This document shows, in pieces, positions 2,081-48,767 of a DNA stretch of 64,000 nt (within the stretch, counting starts at the first letter, position 1; each line of letters starts with the position of its first letter). A program made the position numbers and the translations under genes. Location of the stretch: IMG/VR virus record IMGVR_UViG_3300023179_000009, positions 124,001-188,000 of that record; one strand, given 5' to 3'. A model generated the notes under the pieces. It worked only from the letters and a program-made list of their open reading frames with translations. It made no database searches and was not told the origin of the DNA.

Positions 2081-5000
2081 GTGCTACAAGAACGCCAGCA
2101 ACTTTTAAAACTGTGTGTTTCCTCTTTGGAAAAAAAAGGTTTTTCCGAGGATCAGAGATACAAAGACAGGCTCAAGAGAGAATTGAAAGAAATAGATGCC
2201 CAAGGAGAGCATGAGTATCTATTAAATTTACAAAATCAATTTCAATCAAAGGGATTGATTTTGCCTTATAATCAACATAATCTTCTTGTTTATTATCTTT
2301 TAGATTTGTGTAAAGATTTTGATATTGAAAAAGAATATGCTTGGTATCAAGGTGAGTTTCCAGATATTGATATCGATTATTTAAAAGATGTTCGTGATTA
2401 CATTAAACGTACTTGGGCCGCAGAAAATTTTGGTCAAGATAAAATTTGCGAGATTGGAACATATGGAACAAGTGGTATTAAATCGGCCATTTTAGATATG
2501 GCACGAGTCCATGACGCTGAAAAAGATAGAATTCAGGCTATTACAACAAAGATGTCCGACAAGGACGAAGATGGGCATGATTTAGAGTGGGAAAAAGCTT
2601 TAGAGACATACCCGGAATTTAAATCTTATTGTGAAGATCACTCAGAAGTTGCCGATGCAGCCAAAGCATTATTAGACAGAATACGCACAGGGGGCGTTCA
2701 CGCTGGTGGCTTAATTGTTGCTGATCGTCGTTTAGATGGATTTGTTCCACTTGAAGTTAGAATGGTGAACAAAGAAAATCCAAATGGGGTTATTTGCTCG
2801 GCTTGGACAGAAGGTTTGAACCGTCAAGATCTTGGCCCTGTGGGTTTGATTAAATTTGACTTGTTGGTAATTAGCAATTTAATGCAAATAGCCTTGGCTT
2901 GTGACCTTATAAAAAAAAGACACAGTATTGAAAAAATATGCGCCGCACCTAATCAATGGGATTTCTCCGATTTAAATTATCTCAATGACCCAAAAGCATT
3001 GGCCATGGCAGACAAGGGTGATTTAAAATGTATTTTTCAATTTGATAGCGAAGGCATAAGGAATCTGGTTAAACGTGGTGGGGTTTCTAGTTTTGATGAT
3101 TTAGCAGCTTACTCAGCCATTTACCGCCCAGGGCCTTTAAATATGTCGATGGACGTTCATTATTGTAAAAGAAAAAGAGGCGAAGAGCCTTATGAAATTC
3201 ACCCTTTAATGCAAAAGTCTCTTGCTAAGACTTACGGAATTTTGGTTTTTCAAGAACAAGTTATGGACATCTTGCGTGTTGTTGGTGAAATCCCAGACAT
3301 GCACACAGAGAAGGTCCGAAAAGCTATCTCTAAAAAGAAAATTAAAGATTTTATAAAATACAAAGAAATGTTTATTAAAAATGGACAAAAAAATTTAGGA
3401 GAAAGCGAAGAATATGTTGAGAATTTGTGGAGTACTATAGAAAGTTTTGCAGAATATGGTTTTAATAAAACTTTGACCGAAGATACTATAATAGATTGTG
3501 TTGATGGCTCTAAACAAATTAAACACATAGGTGTTGGCGACAAGGTTTATTGCATAAACGAAAAAGGAGAACGAGCAGAAACAGAAGTTGTAGCAGTTCA
3601 CGATCATGGCGTAATTGATGTTGTTGAAGTCACATTTGATGACGGGTACTCGGTGAAATGCACATTAGATCATAAATTTTTAACCGAAGAAGGGCAAATT
3701 CCACTTTGGAAAATTATTCAAGATAATTTGGTTGTGCTTAGTTCTCCGTTGGGAGAACAAAATGCCACAGAGAAAAAATTGGGAAGCAATTTGCGGAGAG
3801 ATTCTCGGCAACAGAAAAAAAATTATAGAACATCGCAAGAATTGTACAAAATGCAGAGAGATGTATTTGCAAAAGAGAACAGAAAAATACAATCACAAAT
3901 CTCATTGCGGAAAGAAATTTCCAACAAAACACAAACTAGCAGATCACTTGAAAGAATGTCAGGACTGTATTTATTTGAAATGGCGAGAGACAGGAAAGAA
4001 ACACATATCTCGATGCGGGATAGAATTTTTGAGATACAGTTTGTTGGCGGAACACCATCGTCATTGTGCGAAATGCACGGAAATAAAAAAAGAGAACATT
4101 CAAAATCGGATGGACAAGTTAAACAAAGACAACCTGTCTCCAGATCGCAAGGCTATATTTTCTGCAACTGCCAAGAAAACTTCGGCAAGGAAAGATGTTC
4201 AAGAAGCAAGATCTGCACAATTAAAAAGATGGAGGGACAACAACCCAGAAGAGTTTGCGAGATCTATAGAAAAGGCACAACATGCTCCCAAAAAATCAAA
4301 AATGGAAACGTGGTTGAGAAAATATCTGGGATGGAAGCCGAAGAAAATATGTTGTGGGAAAGACAGGAAATTTGTGGATTTAGTAAAGAAAAATATTTGG
4401 ATAGAGGTGGACGGACCGTTCCACTTTTGGCAGGTCGGATCAAAATCGAACAAAAGAGGTCACAATTTAAACTATGTTCAACTCAGAGACCAGATGCTCA
4501 AAGAGGAGTGTTTGAGGAGACAAGATATAATGCTTTTGAGATTGAGCATGACTTGTTTTCACAAAAAAACAGGAGAAATGAAGAAGGAAAGTTTGGATTT
4601 GTTCCAGACTATGCTCCGATCTCCAATACCGGGGATTTGGTGCATAGGAAAGTTCTACGAATTGTGCCCGTGGGCAAAAGACAATGTTACGATCTTGAAG
4701 TTGCTGTAAGCACACATAACTTTATTTTGCCAAATGGGGTTGTCACATCGAATAGCCACTCTTATGCATACACTTATATATCGGCAAGGCTTCTTTGGCT
4801 AAAGGCGCATTATCCTCTTGAGTTCTACGCTGCTATTTTGATGTGTGAAACCGATACGGATAAAATAAAAGATTACAAGATCGATGCCGAGAAGCATGGA
4901 ATTGAAGTTTTGCCTATTCATATAAATTATTCTAAAGAAAATTTTACTATTCACGATAACAAAATATATTTTGGTTTTTCCAATATTAAATCTATAGGAG

Positions 5001-34672: not shown

Positions 34673-35566
34673 ATGGTTTCTGCAACTTTAAAATTCAATA
34701 AATTAAAGAAAAATCAAAAACATGCTGTTTTGACTGAAGCCGAACAGCGTCTAAAAAGAATATTTTTTCACGAAGACTTTGAAAAACCCGCAGAGATCAA
34801 AAAAATTCTTGGACCCATGCCAGATTCCTCAATCTTCGCAGAAGAATTAAGATCAGTAAGATCAAAATATTGTTTTGGCGGCAACAATTTTCAATCTCGT
34901 ATTTTTTATGAAAGTCCTTTGTTAACGAAGGAACAAGAAACTCATTTGTTTAAAAAATACAATTTTTACAAGTACAGAGCAAAAAAAAGATTACACAGAA
35001 AAGAAATCACGGACTCTCTCAGAGATCTTGTTTTGGCTGAAGACGTTAGAAACACTATAGCCGCAGCAAACCTGAGATTGTGTGTTCCCGTTGTCAAAAA
35101 GATGGGAGAAACCCAAAGACTTGATGATTTATTTTCAGAAGGCTGCGATTTGATCCTGAAGTCTGTTGACTACTTTGACCCAAACAGGGGTTTTAAGTTT
35201 TCTACTTACGCAACTTGGGTTCTAAAAAGAAATCTCTACAGAGCCTTAAAATCGTGGCGCAACTTTGAAGAAAGAAACTCTACTTGTTTGAACGAATCTG
35301 GCACCCAAGAAGCCGTTTTTAATCATGATTTTGAAGTAGTTTTTGAACAAACAGATAGGCTTTTAGTTATTAAAAAATTGTTGAATCTTTGCAACGAAAG
35401 AGAAAAAAAAGTTATAGAAAGACGATTTTTTGAGTCTAAAAAACTAATTGATATAGCCTCGGAGTTTGGGCTTTCTAAAGAAAGAATTCGCCAAATTGAA
35501 ACAAGGGCTTTGGAAAAAATGCACCGACAATGTGAACGGATTGGGATTTCTTTTGATTGCTTTTGA
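34673..35566 (+). CDS. Sigma-70 family RNA polymerase sigma factor
   Basis: Region 1.2 PLLTKEQE, region 2 AANLRL...DLFSEG...FDPNRGFKFSTYATW, region 4 SKERIRQIE; AAGGAGG RBS. Confidence 0.93.
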   Translation: MVSATLKFNKLKKNQKHAVLTEAEQRLKRIFFHEDFEKPAEIKKILGPMPDSSIFAEELRSVRSKYCFGGNNFQSRIFYESPLLTKEQETHLFKKYNFYKYRAKKRLHRKEITDSLRDLVLAEDVRNTIAAANLRLCVPVVKKMGETQRLDDLFSEGCDLILKSVDYFDPNRGFKFSTYATWVLKRNLYRALKSWRNFEERNSTCLNESGTQEAVFNHDFEVVFEQTDRLLVIKKLLNLCNEREKKVIERRFFESKKLIDIASEFGLSKERIRQIETRALEKMHRQCERIGISFDCF

Positions 35567-35853: not shown

Positions 35854-35915
35854 TTATTCCATATTGACATTTTGAAAAAAATTATACAATACAACCAACT
35901 GTGGAGAAAAAACTA

Positions 35916-37511
35916 ATGTCCAATAGTAATATTTTTTCAACTAAAACCAAAAAAACTGGGTTTTCTACAAATACAAAAAACAATGCTGGAGGCGATGCTT
36001 ATGAATTTGATCCAAAACATTGTTTGGCTCAAATCGCTGCCACAAACACATTTAGTGGAACTTTTTATGCAACCGCAGAGCAAAATTTTAATTTAGCCAA
36101 AGAATCTGCATTGCGTTTGAAACACGACCCAGAATTCATTGCAAAAGTTGCAATTTATTCTCGTGATAAGTCCTACATGAAAGACATGCCTTGCTTCCTG
36201 ACGGTGTTGCTCTCGGATATTAGCAAGCCTTTGTTTCGCAAAGTTTTTCGTCGTGTGGTTGATAATGGGAAAATGCTTCGAAATGTTATTCAAATGGCTC
36301 GAAGTGGAGTTGTAACCGGAAAAAAAGTTAATGTATCGGCAGGAAGTTGGAGGCACGCCATACAAGAGTGGTTTAATACTCAAAGTTCTTCTAGTATTTT
36401 TAAAGCTTCTATAGGCAACAATCCAACCATGCACGACATTTTAAGAATGTCGCACCCAAAACCAAATTCAATTGAAAAACAATCTTTGTTCGCTTACCTC
36501 TCAGGCAAAGAATTCGATTTTGAAAAACTTCCAGATCAAGTTAAAAAACTTCAAGAATTTAAATCAGGCAAATCAAAAGATATCCCTGATGTCGATTTTA
36601 GATTTTTAGACTCTTTGAATCTTGGTCAAAAAGAGTGGGAAACAATCGCTATTCAATCTCCTTGGCAAATGACAAGGATGAATCTTTTAACTTTTGCTAG
36701 ACATAATGTTTTTGCAAATGAAGATGTTATTCAAATCGTGGCAAATAAATTAAAAGACAAAAAATTAATTAAAAAGTCTCGTGCGTTTCCATACCAATTA
36801 TTCGCTGCTTGGAGACAAGTTGAGAATCAAGTTAATTATTGGATACCTGAAATAATTAAATCATCACTCGAAGAGGCTATGGAAGTTGCCATCGACAATG
36901 TCCCAGAAATCCCTGGAAAGGGTCTGGTCTGTGTGGACTGCTCTGGATCCATGACTTCACCAATAACCGGTTTTAGAAACCACAGGAGTAACTCTAGTGT
37001 ATCTTGCAGCGACGTTGCTGGACTTTTAGCTTCAGCCATACATCGAAAAAACAAATCTGTTGAGGTTTGGACTTTTTCGGATAGTGCCAACATGGTTGAA
37101 TTAGACCTTAAAGACAATGTGCTAAAAAACACAGAAAAATTAAATCGTGCTGGCGGGGGAACCAATATATCGGCACCAATGCACCGTTTCAATTCAGACT
37201 TCAAAAACGCTGATTGGATTTTATATGTATCAGACTATGAGTCTTGGATTGACTCGCCATCTGCTGGTTACGGTTATAACTCAACGGGTCTGTCCTATGA
37301 ATGGGACATTTTTAAGAAAAGAAACAATCACGCTAAATTAATTTGTTGTGATTTGACCCCTAGAGATAACTCTCAAATTTCTGTTAGAAAAGATGTTCTT
37401 CAAGTCGGAGGATTCTCAGATCAAGTTTTTGATGTCGTTTCTTCTTTTGTTTCTCAATCTAAAAGCAAAGATTTTTGGGTTGAAGAAATAAATAAAATAT
37501 CTTTGGACTAA
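35916..37511 (+). CDS. Ro60/Rsr-like TROVE-vWA RNA-binding protein
   Basis: NNAGGDAY, GTFYA, KDMP, PWQMTRMNL, SRAFPYQLF, vWA VDCSGSM, GGTNIS, VSDYESW, VGGFSDQVF; GGAG RBS 9 nt before ATG. Confidence 0.92.
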   Translation: MSNSNIFSTKTKKTGFSTNTKNNAGGDAYEFDPKHCLAQIAATNTFSGTFYATAEQNFNLAKESALRLKHDPEFIAKVAIYSRDKSYMKDMPCFLTVLLSDISKPLFRKVFRRVVDNGKMLRNVIQMARSGVVTGKKVNVSAGSWRHAIQEWFNTQSSSSIFKASIGNNPTMHDILRMSHPKPNSIEKQSLFAYLSGKEFDFEKLPDQVKKLQEFKSGKSKDIPDVDFRFLDSLNLGQKEWETIAIQSPWQMTRMNLLTFARHNVFANEDVIQIVANKLKDKKLIKKSRAFPYQLFAAWRQVENQVNYWIPEIIKSSLEEAMEVAIDNVPEIPGKGLVCVDCSGSMTSPITGFRNHRSNSSVSCSDVAGLLASAIHRKNKSVEVWTFSDSANMVELDLKDNVLKNTEKLNRAGGGTNISAPMHRFNSDFKNADWILYVSDYESWIDSPSAGYGYNSTGLSYEWDIFKKRNNHAKLICCDLTPRDNSQISVRKDVLQVGGFSDQVFDVVSSFVSQSKSKDFWVEEINKISLD

Positions 37512-37512
37512 T

Positions 37513-37540
37513 TTGACAATTCGAAAATTTACCGTAAAAT
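37513..37540 (+). promoter_or_regulatory. Sigma-70-type promoter for the RNA cluster
   Basis: TTGACA (37513)-N16-TAAAAT (37535), 6 nt before the tRNA-like RNA. Confidence 0.65.
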
Positions 37541-37546
37541 AAATTT

Positions 37547-37634
37547 AGACAAGTAGCTCAATGGCAGAGTCCGTCATTGTAAGAAGGTTTGCACCTTTGG
37601 ACGGAGGTTGCAGGTTCAATTCCTGTCTTGTCTT
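37547..37634 (+). tRNA. tRNA-like RNA (Thr-UGU-like loop) with 17-nt hairpin insertion in the anticodon arm
   Basis: Acceptor AGACAAG/CTTGTCT, D arm GCTC-AATGGCA-GAGT, stem CCGTC/GACGG enclosing 24 nt, T arm GCAGG-TTCAATT-CCTGT; no CCA. Confidence 0.75.
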
Positions 37635-37636
37635 TT

Positions 37637-37702
37637 TAGCGGAATGCCGTTGTGGTCCACATCACTACTGGAAAGATGACTATAACAATAAGTTGTCCGC
37701 TA
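37637..37702 (+). ncRNA. Y-RNA-like RNA 1
   Basis: Terminal stem TAGCGGA/TCCGCTA, inner stem GTTGTGGTC/GACTATAAC followed by a bulged C (Ro60-site-like GGUC-C/GACU), 3' U tract; downstream of Ro60. Confidence 0.75.
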
Positions 37703-37718
37703 TTTTTTTTGTTTAATT

Positions 37719-37781
37719 TGAGGAATGCCGAACAGGTCTACATCAAAAGGTTTAATGAACTTGTTCAAAATTTTGTCCTCA
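37719..37781 (+). ncRNA. Y-RNA-like RNA 2 (paralog of RNA 1)
   Basis: TGAGGA/TCCTCA and GAACAGGT/ACTTGTTC stems; shares GGAATGCCG, GGTCyACATC and TGTCC with RNA 1; 3' U tract. Confidence 0.7.
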
Positions 37782-37797
37782 TTTTTGGAGAAAAATT

Positions 37798-38214
37798 GTG
37801 AAAAATAAAATTTATCTTGTTGTTTCTTTAATTCTGGGCTTATTTTTTGTTTTCTTTATTTCTAATTTAGAAAACAAAAAATCTAATTCTAATTCATTGA
37901 TTAATAAAAAAACTCAGCAAGAAAATAATTTTGTTGTTGAAATAAACAATAAAATAGATGAATCAAAAATTTATGAGATTGCCTATCAAAGAGGATACAA
38001 TTCTTTTATGAGACAAGTGGGAAGACCAGATCTTGTTCACAACGGCAACAATAATGAAAAAATTGAGATGTATACATCAAATATAATTGAAGAGATGTCA
38101 GAGGAAGAAAAACAAAAAATAGAAAAAATATCTGCCAAAGCTTATGTCGATGGATATCATAAAGCAGGCGATTCCACCGTTTGTCCTAGATTCAAAGAAG
38201 CAAGACACAATTAA
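37798..38214 (+). CDS. Membrane-anchored hypothetical protein
   Basis: GTG with GGAG RBS; N-terminal TM helix. Confidence 0.65.
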   Translation: MKNKIYLVVSLILGLFFVFFISNLENKKSNSNSLINKKTQQENNFVVEINNKIDESKIYEIAYQRGYNSFMRQVGRPDLVHNGNNNEKIEMYTSNIIEEMSEEEKQKIEKISAKAYVDGYHKAGDSTVCPRFKEARHN

Positions 38215-39982: not shown

Positions 39983-40897
39983 ATGAACACTGAATGGACT
40001 CCAGATTTTCCAGTTTATGTTTATTATAAAGACATGAAACTTCCGGATAGTGGCAATTATTTTGTGATTGCTGGCAATGGTTGCTGGATGCACAAAGACA
40101 CAGGTTTGTGTAAGTGTTTTATACCAGTCGATAGAATTAGTTTTTTAGACGATCTTAAAACTGACCTAAGATTAGAGTTTAACTTGCCAAAAATACCACC
40201 AGATTTGGTTTGGCAAGTTAAACAATTTTTCAAAATTGTTTTCGATAATTTTTCGTCAGAGGCAGAGGTTAATTTATTATTTAATAAAAAAGAAAATAAG
40301 TTTAAGATCCATGTGCCAGAGCAAATTGTTAGCCACACTAGTGTGAAATATAAACGTTGGAGTTCAAACCAATCAGAGGATTTAAAAGATTATTTATTTG
40401 TTGGAACTTTTCATTCACATAGTGACTTTGATTCATTTCATAGTCACACGGATGTTCAAGATGAGACACATCTGGATGGTGTTCATTTTACTTTTGGCAA
40501 TAACGATAAAAAAGAGTTTAGTATAACTGCAAGTATAGTTATAAATGGATTTAGAAAAGAAGTAGATCCTTTAAATTTCTTACAAGGAATTCAAAATTCG
40601 GACCTTGAAGAAAGATTCATTTTTATTAATCATAAAAATGAAAAACAGGATGAACTGTTGCAAGAAGTTAACGATTGGTTAGAAAATGTAAAACCTTTAA
40701 ATAATAAGTATCTAAAAAAACAATACGCACACTGGAAAGACGGTATGTTTTCTTCCACCCTCAGGAACCATTTTGGCAATGGTCCTTTTGAGGTTTTGTC
40801 AAAAAAAGAAGACAAAATATCACTTAAATCATTGAATGGTGGTGCATTTGAATTATCAAATAAACTTTTTGAAATAAGGTCAAAAGATGGAAAATAA
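39983..40897 (+). CDS. JAB/MPN+ deconjugating metallopeptidase
   Basis: SEAEV (Glu) and GTFHSHSDFDSFHSHTDVQDE (HxH-x7-S-xx-D). Confidence 0.85.
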   Translation: MNTEWTPDFPVYVYYKDMKLPDSGNYFVIAGNGCWMHKDTGLCKCFIPVDRISFLDDLKTDLRLEFNLPKIPPDLVWQVKQFFKIVFDNFSSEAEVNLLFNKKENKFKIHVPEQIVSHTSVKYKRWSSNQSEDLKDYLFVGTFHSHSDFDSFHSHTDVQDETHLDGVHFTFGNNDKKEFSITASIVINGFRKEVDPLNFLQGIQNSDLEERFIFINHKNEKQDELLQEVNDWLENVKPLNNKYLKKQYAHWKDGMFSSTLRNHFGNGPFEVLSKKEDKISLKSLNGGAFELSNKLFEIRSKDGK

Positions 40898-41597
40898 TAT
40901 AGAAAAAATTAAAATCATAGGTCTGGGCGGAATTGGCTCCTATCTTTTAGATCCAATCTCTAGGTATCTGTCTTGCTCCGAAAAACAATATGAGATAACT
41001 TTTATCGATGGTGATTTTTATGAAGAAAAAAATTTAAATAGACAAAACTTTAGTTTATTTCAAAATAAAGCAAAGGATGCATTCGAGAGAATGCAAAGCG
41101 TTTTTAAAAACATTCACTTTAAATACAAGCCAGAATATGTAAACGAAGACAATGTGGTGTCTTTAATAAGAAATAATGATATAATATTTTTATGTGTAGA
41201 TAATCACTCCACCAGAAAAACTGTATCGGATAGGTGCAAAGAATTAGATAATGTTGTTTTGATAAGTGGAGGAAATGATTTAATAGATGGGAATGTTATA
41301 ATTTATATTAGAAAAAACTCAGTAGATATCACACGATCCTTAACGGATTTGGATCCAAGAATACACAACCCAAAAGACAGCAATCCTTCAACTTTGAAAA
41401 ATAATAGTGGTTGCCAAAATTCTACCCAATCCGAACCTCAATTGCTTTTCACAAATTTTGCCGTTGCCTCCACTATGCTGAACTGTTTTAGAAGATACGA
41501 AAATAACGATGTGAATTTTCATCAAGTTTATATTGATATACAAACTCTAAGAACTAGACCTTCACCAGAGGTAGAAATTGAAAAGAGGAATTTTTAA
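40887..41597 (+). CDS. ThiF/E1-like activating enzyme
   Basis: IIGLGGIGS, IDGDFYEEKNLNRQ, FLCVDN, ISGGND, candidate catalytic Cys in SGC. Confidence 0.9.
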   Translation: MENNIEKIKIIGLGGIGSYLLDPISRYLSCSEKQYEITFIDGDFYEEKNLNRQNFSLFQNKAKDAFERMQSVFKNIHFKYKPEYVNEDNVVSLIRNNDIIFLCVDNHSTRKTVSDRCKELDNVVLISGGNDLIDGNVIIYIRKNSVDITRSLTDLDPRIHNPKDSNPSTLKNNSGCQNSTQSEPQLLFTNFAVASTMLNCFRRYENNDVNFHQVYIDIQTLRTRPSPEVEIEKRNF

Positions 41598-46597: not shown

Positions 46598-46668
46598 GCG
46601 GGTGTGGTGTAGTAGTAACACGAAAGTCTTCCAAACTTTAGATTTCGGAGCATAACCGAATACCCGCT
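46598..46668 (+). tRNA. tRNA-Gly(UCC) with non-canonical D/T loops
   Basis: GCGGGTG/TACCCGC acceptor, AAAGT-CTTCCAA-ACTTT anticodon arm, D loop AGTAGTA, T arm TTCGG-AGCATAA-CCGAA. Confidence 0.85.
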
Positions 46669-46686
46669 CTTTGGAGTTAATTAATA

Positions 46687-48461: not shown

Positions 48462-48699
48462 AGATGCTCTTCTCGGCATCGGAACCAAAAAAGGATCGGA
48501 AGATTCTTTGGTCTATGATTATGATAAATGTGTAGAAATATTAATCGAGCGAGAAGGCATGTCGCACGAAGAAGCAATTGAGTGGATGGAATTTAATGTT
48601 GTAGACGCTTATGTTGGCCCGACTACCCCAATATTCGTTCACACGGACCCAGAATATACAATTCAATATATTCAATCTAATAGTGACGACATTGCCTAG
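48436..48699 (+). CDS. Conserved phage-type hypothetical protein
   Basis: ADGFEDALLG...VYDYDKCVEIL...GMSHEEAIEWMEFNVVDAYVGPTTPIF; 3' end overlaps tRNA-Cys. Confidence 0.75.
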   Translation: MLLQADGFEDALLGIGTKKGSEDSLVYDYDKCVEILIEREGMSHEEAIEWMEFNVVDAYVGPTTPIFVHTDPEYTIQYIQSNSDDIA

Positions 48700-48767
48700 T
48701 GGCGACGGCAACAGTCTGCAAAACTGTCGAGGAAACTCCATCGTGGGTTCGAGTCCCACTGTCGTCT
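48685..48767 (+). tRNA. tRNA-Cys(GCA) with long variable arm
   Basis: GACGACA/TGTCGTC acceptor, U73, ACAGT-CTGCAAA-ACTGT, variable region CGAGGAAACTCCATC, GTGGG-TTCGAGT-CCCAC. Confidence 0.88.

Follow-up and report, generated by a model that had tools for sequence, protein, structure and literature searches.

The Ro60 locus and its tRNA-like RNA

The window analysed here is a stretch of 64,000 nucleotides (nt) corresponding to positions 124001-188000 of the IMG/VR virus record IMGVR_UViG_3300023179_000009. This record of 458,813 bp, which originates from a freshwater/lake metagenome and has a G+C content of about 32%, is about 91% complete, and therefore represents a huge phage. The window carries, in the 5' to 3' order on its plus strand (to which all window coordinates given below refer), the gene of a Ro60 protein, an 88-nt tRNA-like RNA (37547-37634) and two Y RNAs, hereafter Y1 and Y2. 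A scan of the whole 459-kb genome returned a single long-armed tRNA-like RNA and a single Y locus, both located here. The subject of the present report is the tRNA-like RNA, a complete cloverleaf with a remodelled anticodon arm. The Ro60 gene (35901-37511) encodes a 536-amino-acid protein with the TROVE and vWA_Ro60 domains (Pfam PF25045, E=2.9e-12; PF05731, E=1.5e-10), which has more than 2000 homologs at E<=1e-100, several of them labelled at source as 60 kDa SS-A/Ro. Its stop codon lies 36 nt from the start of the tRNA-like RNA, i.e. within the few kb expected between Ro60 and YrlA (Rfam RF02553), the tRNA-mimicking Y RNA. Between them stands a predicted sigma-70-type promoter (37513-37540; TTGACA, a 16-nt spacer and TAAAAT; 11/12 consensus matches), the -10 hexamer of which ends 6 nt upstream of nucleotide 1 of the tRNA-like RNA.

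ARAGORN called the element as a tRNA-Thr(tgt) of 88 nt, and the Rfam tRNA model (RF00005) recognised it with 43.7 bits (gathering score 29; E=5.5e-6 for the 64-kb window), which bears out the original prediction, made by reading the letters, that its acceptor, D and T arms are normal. It comprises a 7-bp acceptor stem that begins with the A1-U72 pair (37547-53/37627-33), a D arm (37556-70), an anticodon arm (37571-37604), a 5-nt variable loop (AGGUU), a T arm (37610-26) and a discriminator U (37634), without an encoded CCA. The nucleotides of the tRNA core are all present, namely U8, A14, the A15:U48 Levitt pair, G18G19, the G53:C61 pair and the UUCAA T-loop (UUCAAUU), and in its cloverleaf the RNA is thus similar to a canonical tRNA. 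It departs from one in two respects, the 7-nt anticodon loop and nucleotide 26. Exactly as had been described, the anticodon stem CCGUC/GACGG (37571-75/37600-04) encloses 24 nt (24-25 nt across the orthologs presented below), which consist of AUUGUAA (37576-82), an inserted 6-bp hairpin GAAGGU-UUGC-ACCUUU (37583-98), in which the five anticipated pairs of AAGGT-TTGC-ACCTT are extended by one G.U pair, and a single G (37599). The hairpin leaves AUUGYAA as a 7-nt bulge in a lengthened anticodon arm. In the Rfam alignment the anticodon loop contains 21 inserted nt, and a gap falls where the D stem gives way to the anticodon stem; position 26 is therefore missing, as previously suspected. The minimum-energy structure computed with RNAfold is exactly this cloverleaf, both for the RNA alone and for the RNA within its 254-nt unit.

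Y1 (37637-37702) is made of the basal stem UAGCGGA/UCCGCUA, the 5' internal loop AUGCC, a second helix and the UCCACAU apical region, and it is followed by a terminator-like run of eight T (37703-37710). Y2 (37720-37780) shows the same architecture on a GAGGA/UCCUC basal stem, and it is followed by a terminator-like run of five T (37782-37786). The fold of Y1 comprises 16 pairs, 8 of which display compensatory changes (RNAalifold, 10 sequences), and that of Y2 comprises 13 pairs, 2 of them compensated (alignment of 7 orthologs). Common to both RNAs are the GGAAUGC motif of the 5' internal loop, the second helix and an apical region of the CUACAU type; Y1 carries the GGAAUGCC...GGUCYACAU motif common to phage Y RNAs. 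Dozens of phage Ro60 loci contain the motif [CG]GAAUGC-N4-6-GGNCUACAU, which is the equivalent of GNCGAAN0-1G/CGAA in the Y RNAs of bacteria and phages (PMC4201824; PMC12135203). Neither Y1 nor Y2 matched an Rfam family, the Y RNA models included.

Conservation of the cloverleaf and of its anticodon arm

Using the neighbouring Ro60 protein to fetch orthologs, we aligned the window element with six relatives from independent metagenomes, one from IMG/VR (L002/L007, the Ro60 of which is 84% identical to that of the window) and five from Logan/ENA (L149, 96%; L150, 88%; L151, 68%; L152, 67%; L159, 67%). First, all 27 pairs are kept in the seven orthologs (100% of 189 cells), as compared with only 40-54% for slid-partner controls. 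Second, double-sided compensatory changes occur in five pairs: one in the anticodon stem (G-C to A-U, in L151), three in the inserted hairpin (U-A/C-G once, G-C/A-U twice) and one in the T stem. Third, the mean column identity is 91%, with no broken pair, over a Ro60 divergence down to 67%. Fourth, the inserted hairpin is retained in every ortholog. This conserved pairing and these compensatory changes therefore point to a selected structure, and not to a decaying pseudogene. The original prediction had placed the decision on the conservation of the insert; the insert is kept throughout, and the alternative outcome, orthologs deprived of it and in random decay, was not encountered. A search of IMG/VR for the exact arm motif yielded a match only in the 84% relative already known.

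Two other folds of the arm were considered. The fold drawn by ARAGORN (stem CCGUC/GAAGG with a G.A mismatch, followed by a 22-nt variable region) was rejected because its stem pairs in 71% of the cells and its middle pair (27-39) in none. An alternative hairpin (UGYAAG/YUUGYR with the loop AAGG; 37578-83 with 37588-93) can form in 7/7 orthologs, excludes the inserted hairpin, from which it differs by about 1-3.6 kcal/mol at most, and has the greater stability in five of the seven sequences. It is backed by wobble-neutral one-sided changes alone, and covariation favours the inserted hairpin over it; the anticodon arm may nevertheless have two states. We also looked at a trans pairing between the AUUGY/UUGC loop and Y1 (ACAAU/GCAAU), which seems good in the window and L007 and fails in L151, L152 and L159; the sequence changes in Y1 are attributable to Y1's own helix, not to such a pairing.

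The following lines of evidence indicate that the RNA is not a decoding tRNA. First, five orthologs have the triplet UGU at the place of the anticodon and the other two (L007 and L159) have UGC, with no accompanying change in acceptor identity: the acceptor stem AGACAAG/CUUGUCU is constant save for one A-U to G.U change, and A1-U72 remains the same, whereas in a canonical tRNA the anticodon is conserved and matches the acceptor identity. Bacterial tRNA-Thr molecules have G1-C72/C2-G71 in their acceptor stem. Second, a canonical tRNA-Thr(UGU) of 73 nt is encoded elsewhere in the phage genome (309512-309584). Third, the relatives L155-L158 possess at the same place tRNA-like RNAs, the anticodon arms of which are capped by GAAA, GCAA or GUAA.

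Similarly to the intron-containing tRNAs of archaea and eukaryotes (bulge-helix-bulge type) or of bacteria (group I type), the element has extra nucleotides 3' of position 37/38. A bulge-helix-bulge motif consists of two 3-nt bulges 4 bp apart, and this geometry is found in neither conformer of the arm, the loops being of 7 and 1 nt in the supported fold and of 2 and 6 nt in the alternative one. A tRNA splicing endonuclease (tRNA_int_endo, PF01974) and RtcB (PF01139) were not found in the phage genome, and the 17-nt insert falls far below the size of a group I intron or of any ribozyme. Unlike an intron, the insert occurs in all orthologs, next to a variable triplet. A tRNA with a mini-intron, one of the three options of the original prediction, was consequently rejected on these grounds, to which the canonical tRNA-Thr(UGU) and the relatives lacking an anticodon loop also contribute. 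The other two options, a non-decoding tRNA mimic and a partner or leader in a Ro60/Y-RNA context (here a TROVE + vWA_Ro60 reading frame upstream and two Y RNAs downstream), both appear to fit the comparative data, and they are not mutually exclusive.

Comparison with YrlA and with other Ro60 loci

As seen in a comparison set of phage and metagenome Ro60 loci (L-numbered), tRNA-like and Ro60-binding modules are joined in three ways. Form (i) is the classic permuted YrlA, with a loop-closed acceptor stem, and it occurs in L031 (RF02553, 59.4 bits), L014, L021, L052 and L053. Form (ii) is an unpermuted tRNA-like RNA of 119-215 nt with a whole Y module inside its anticodon arm, in the order 3'-strand (CUUGUC), loop, 5'-strand (GAAUGC...CUACAU), i.e. 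a circularly permuted Y module. It is found in L008/L070/L071, L064, L101 (three copies), L016, L017 (two copies), L054, L080 and L083 (for instance L008:4373-4501, L064:4301-4423, L101:3332-3453/3566-3685/4048-4173, L017:5046-5179/5184-5311 and L083:3503-3717), and several of these RNAs score 36-51 bits on the Rfam tRNA model. Form (iii), the tandem form of the window, is an unpermuted tRNA-like RNA with a short closed anticodon arm, followed by a simple Y RNA. The possibility that the 24-nt insert is a shrunken Y module (CCUUUGG versus CCUUGUUGG of L008) was also considered; the stretch compared is too short for a verdict.

The next-closest Ro60 clade (58-61% identity, L155-L158) harbours at the same place arrays of three to five tRNA-like RNAs (L155:3251-3752, L156:3401-4275, L157:~3700-4406, L158:3125-3830), interleaved with Y RNAs or stable hairpins. 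These RNAs score 44-56 bits on the Rfam tRNA model and have intact acceptor, D and T arms, while their anticodon arm is either a stem, an internal loop and a GNRA-capped hairpin, or a bare GNRA hairpin. Some of them have D-loop insertions of 30-45 nt, and a conserved CUUG often stands right after their discriminator A. The seven window-type loci make up a 100/100 clade of the Ro60 tree, inside a larger 100/100 clade that also takes in the array-type loci; the outgroups are first L008 and L017 (form ii) and next the YrlA-bearing loci, under a root set at the midpoint only. We did not find forms (ii) and (iii) in the literature searched. [quoted passage not shown] As a separate observation, a gene resembling that of the major vault protein (MVP; Pfam MVP_shoulder, Vault_3) lies just downstream of the array in L155 (4302-4596) and L157 (4566-4590), both of them related huge phages, the genes running off the loci; a TROVE protein, small RNAs and an MVP recall the eukaryotic vault particle. 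No MVP-like gene was detected in the phage of the window, in a search of which the controls were likewise without a match.

Similarly to YrlA, for which tRNA mimicry has been described (PMC4201824, Chen et al. 2014; bioRxiv 10.1101/312249, Wang et al. 2018), the window element is encoded beside Ro60, together with a simpler, YrlB-like Y RNA, and it has D and T arms, an acceptor, a variable loop and the tertiary nucleotides of tRNAs, without a functional anticodon loop. The YrlA of M. smegmatis is cleaved by RNase P and receives CCA. Unlike the window element, YrlA is circularly permuted and ends in the Ro60-binding stem, whereas the element runs acceptor-D-anticodon-variable-T-acceptor and ends at its acceptor stem; the same scan detected permuted elements in other loci, not in the window. 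Furthermore, YrlA bears the Ro60-binding motif in the same RNA, whereas in the window this motif resides only in the separate downstream Y1 and Y2.

The element resembles the form (ii) RNAs by its unpermuted cloverleaf, its place after Ro60 (as in L008), the simple Y RNAs next to it and its Ro60, for which theirs is the nearest outgroup, and it differs from them by its 24-nt arm devoid of the CUUGUC...GAAUGC...CUACAU motifs that occupy their arm of 60-140 nt. Yrn1 of Deinococcus radiodurans also has, in the unpermuted order, a T arm and a stem-loop at the position of the anticodon arm (PMC4201824); its Ro60-binding stem, however, extends the acceptor side and its D arm is doubtful, whereas the window element has a complete tRNA core and no Ro60 site. 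Lastly, in the mascRNA of MALAT1 and in tRNA punctuation, a non-decoding tRNA shape likewise adjoins another noncoding RNA, the end of which it could set through RNase P or RNase Z. In contrast to these eukaryotic or organellar cases, the window element is under selection over the whole cloverleaf plus an extra hairpin, and the adjacent RNA of one window-type ortholog appears to be served by a promoter of its own.

Interpretation of the element and competing explanations

From this body of evidence we propose, as the probable interpretation, that the element is a real, conserved, non-decoding tRNA mimic belonging to the phage Ro60/Y-RNA module, and a new topological variant of the YrlA kind. 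It would most likely be the unpermuted, stand-alone counterpart of YrlA's tRNA-like domain, that is to say the mimic half of a tandem ("split") YrlA-type system. Judged from sequence comparisons, it is not a member of RF02553, nor an intron-bearing tRNA, nor a pseudogene.

By analogy with YrlA, the system may operate as follows. The tRNA-like RNA, Y1 and Y2 would be transcribed as one unit, and in the four closest orthologs (the promoter geometry of the window is also kept in L149, L150 and L007) transcription from the predicted promoter would begin with nucleotide 1 of the tRNA-like RNA. This geometry is absent from L151 and L159, where a small open reading frame lies upstream of the tRNA-like RNA, and from L152, where the Ro60 stop codon is immediately followed by the element and no promoter intervenes. 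The tRNA body would be recognised by the host RNase Z, by RNase P where a leader is present, and by the phage CCA-adding-type enzymes. Cleavage would then separate the mimic from Y1, the stem of which starts 3 nt past the discriminator, and an RNase Z cut after U73 would leave a 3-nt 5' tail on Y1. The extra hairpin would bar the tRNA-like RNA from translation, and the L-shaped body would act as the effector, or handle, half of a Ro60-Y ribonucleoprotein (RNP) by engaging a tRNA-binding factor, as has been proposed for YrlA. Possible modes of such engagement are competition for a nuclease that attacks tRNAs and the tethering of an enzyme of RNA decay or repair. In a more speculative and rather doubtful extension of this proposal, the tRNA mimic and the Ro60-binding module would be an evolutionary "kit" assembled by phages in at least three topologies, and the bistable arm of the split form would expose or hide AUUGYAA. 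The mimic could thereby serve as a decoy or sensor, uncleavable and regulated, for host defences that target tRNAs, the damaged RNA being handled by Ro60-Y RNPs.

Several observations weigh against the interpretation of the element as a YrlA-like mimic. First, the Ro60-binding motif (GNCGAAN0-1G; here GGAAUGC...CUACAU) is absent from 37547-37634, and RF02553 has no match at E<=10 in 37300-38000, the control L031 giving 59.4 bits; in view of these two negative results, a physical link to Ro60 is suggested by gene neighbourhood only. Second, in L152 about 40 nt, holding a T-run and an extended -10 promoter, separate the tRNA-like RNA from Y1, so that covalent or co-processing coupling is not obligatory. 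Third, in YrlA and form (ii) the L bears its Y module at the anticodon end, and in the window the Y module comes after the acceptor end; the geometry is therefore not equivalent. Fourth, neither a tRNA-like RNA nor a Y RNA is seen in the fetched DNA of L153 and L154, two close members of the clade. Fifth, three metatranscriptomes of the source study yielded no sequence over the tRNA-like RNA. In a freshwater metatranscriptome (run X23), a 161-nt contig corresponds to 37671-37831 of a relative less than 90% alike; it takes in Y1 in its 3' half, the whole of Y2 and a further 45 nt or so, stops short of the tRNA-like RNA, and may come from DNA carry-over. Finally, even for YrlA the effector is a presumed one, which would read the D and T stems.

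The main rival is a pure processing or stabilising leader, the shape of which would only recruit RNase Z or RNase P to define the ends of Y1 and Y2, or the 3' end of the Ro60 mRNA, the released piece being functionless. We regard it as unlikely, though it accounts for several facts. The Y stem starts 2-4 nt past the discriminator in six of the seven orthologs, the exception being L152, and likewise in the array units of L156 and L158, and such immediate adjacency is what a leader should show. Y RNAs are interleaved with ordinary tRNAs in many other phages (L044, L050, L063, L025), and the position of the L152 element directly after the Ro60 stop codon, with no promoter between, also agrees with a leader. 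RNase P and RNase Z, however, need little beyond the acceptor and T arms, whereas conservation, compensatory changes included, extends to the D arm, the tertiary nucleotides, the anticodon stem and the inserted hairpin as well. Moreover, the L152 element is fully conserved even though Y1 seems to have its own extended -10 promoter there, and 5' processing would be unneeded in the four orthologs in which transcription would begin at nucleotide 1.

A second rival, which we hold to be improbable, is an uncleavable decoy or competitive inhibitor of a host anticodon nuclease aimed at UGY-anticodon tRNAs, acting independently of Ro60. AUUGYAA, present in 7/7 orthologs, indeed resembles a genuine anticodon loop (U33, purine 37). 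The phage also encodes Rnl1-type (T4 Rnl1) and Rnl2-type RNA ligases (genome positions 271046-271642 and 280677-281180) and two PolyA_pol/CCA-type nucleotidyltransferases (210112-210540 and 379531-379992), which belong to families used by other phages for tRNA repair; the ligases indicate that tRNA breakage concerns the phage and point to a conflict over tRNA cleavage. Competitive inhibition of an anticodon nuclease has already been proposed for YrlA (PMC7790460). On the other hand, the clade relatives have GNRA tetraloops at the same locus, with no anticodon-like loop, the strict position at the Ro60 locus is left unexplained and the nuclease itself would be a hypothetical one.

A genuine tRNA-Thr decoding ACA, from which the 17-nt insert would be removed as a mini-intron or in which it would be tolerated, is very improbable. 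It agrees with the ARAGORN and Rfam tRNA calls, with the loop U33-UGU-A37, with the RNA ligases and CCA-type enzymes, and with the long introns that ARAGORN -i predicted outside the window in a tRNA-Leu(taa) (743-nt intron; genome positions 318366-319194) and a tRNA-Gln(ttg) (216-nt intron; 333860-334148). It is at variance with the missing nucleotide 26, with the presence of the insert in every ortholog, and with the arguments given above, namely the UGU/UGC switch, the A1-U72 pair, the canonical tRNA-Thr(UGU) and the lack of any splicing signal, of tRNA_int_endo or RtcB and of a group I-sized insert. It is scarcely credible that the RNA is a pseudo-tRNA in decay, or that it is class-II-like, with the anticodon stem CCGUC/GAAGG and a long variable arm: the ARAGORN drawing and nearby phage tRNAs with long variable arms speak for it, and the poor pairing of that stem across orthologs, the covariation of the other stem and of the hairpin and the 91% column identity without a broken pair speak against it.

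If the element is a mimic of the YrlA kind, it is here a separate gene with tRNA-like ends, which can be removed, exchanged or expressed independently of the Ro60-binding RNA. Together with the relatives in which the modules are joined differently, this separate gene therefore offers a natural dissection of the Y RNA system. Furthermore, the "odd tRNAs" found beside Ro60 in huge phages are probably not translation tRNAs, which bears on tRNA counts and on codon-usage arguments in huge-phage genomics.

Other odd tRNAs were noticed in the course of this work. In the window, a tRNA-Cys(GCA) of 83 nt (48685-48767) has a class-II-like variable arm folding as the stem-loop GAG-GAAA-CUC, which is unusual for Cys, and a tRNA-Gly(UCC) (46598-46669) has the T loop AGCAUAA without UUC and a D loop without GG. 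In several soil-metagenome loci, the region upstream of Ro60 contains tRNAs of 92 nt that combine a CUUAUAA loop (UAU) with a long variable arm (L125:872-963, L131:163-254, L138:182-273, L147:1279-1370), and long-armed tRNAs of a similar kind, for Ile(tat), Thr(tgt) and Cys(gca), occur in L005. As for the neighbouring protein genes, a sigma-70-family factor (regions 2 and 4; 34673-35566) is encoded just upstream of Ro60, and the relatives L152-L154 and L157 share the gene order NAD-dependent DNA ligase, sigma factor, Ro60. Further downstream (39983-41597), adjacent genes with Prok-JAB (weak) and ThiF/E1-like domains make up a ubiquitin-like conjugation/deconjugation pair in a phage.

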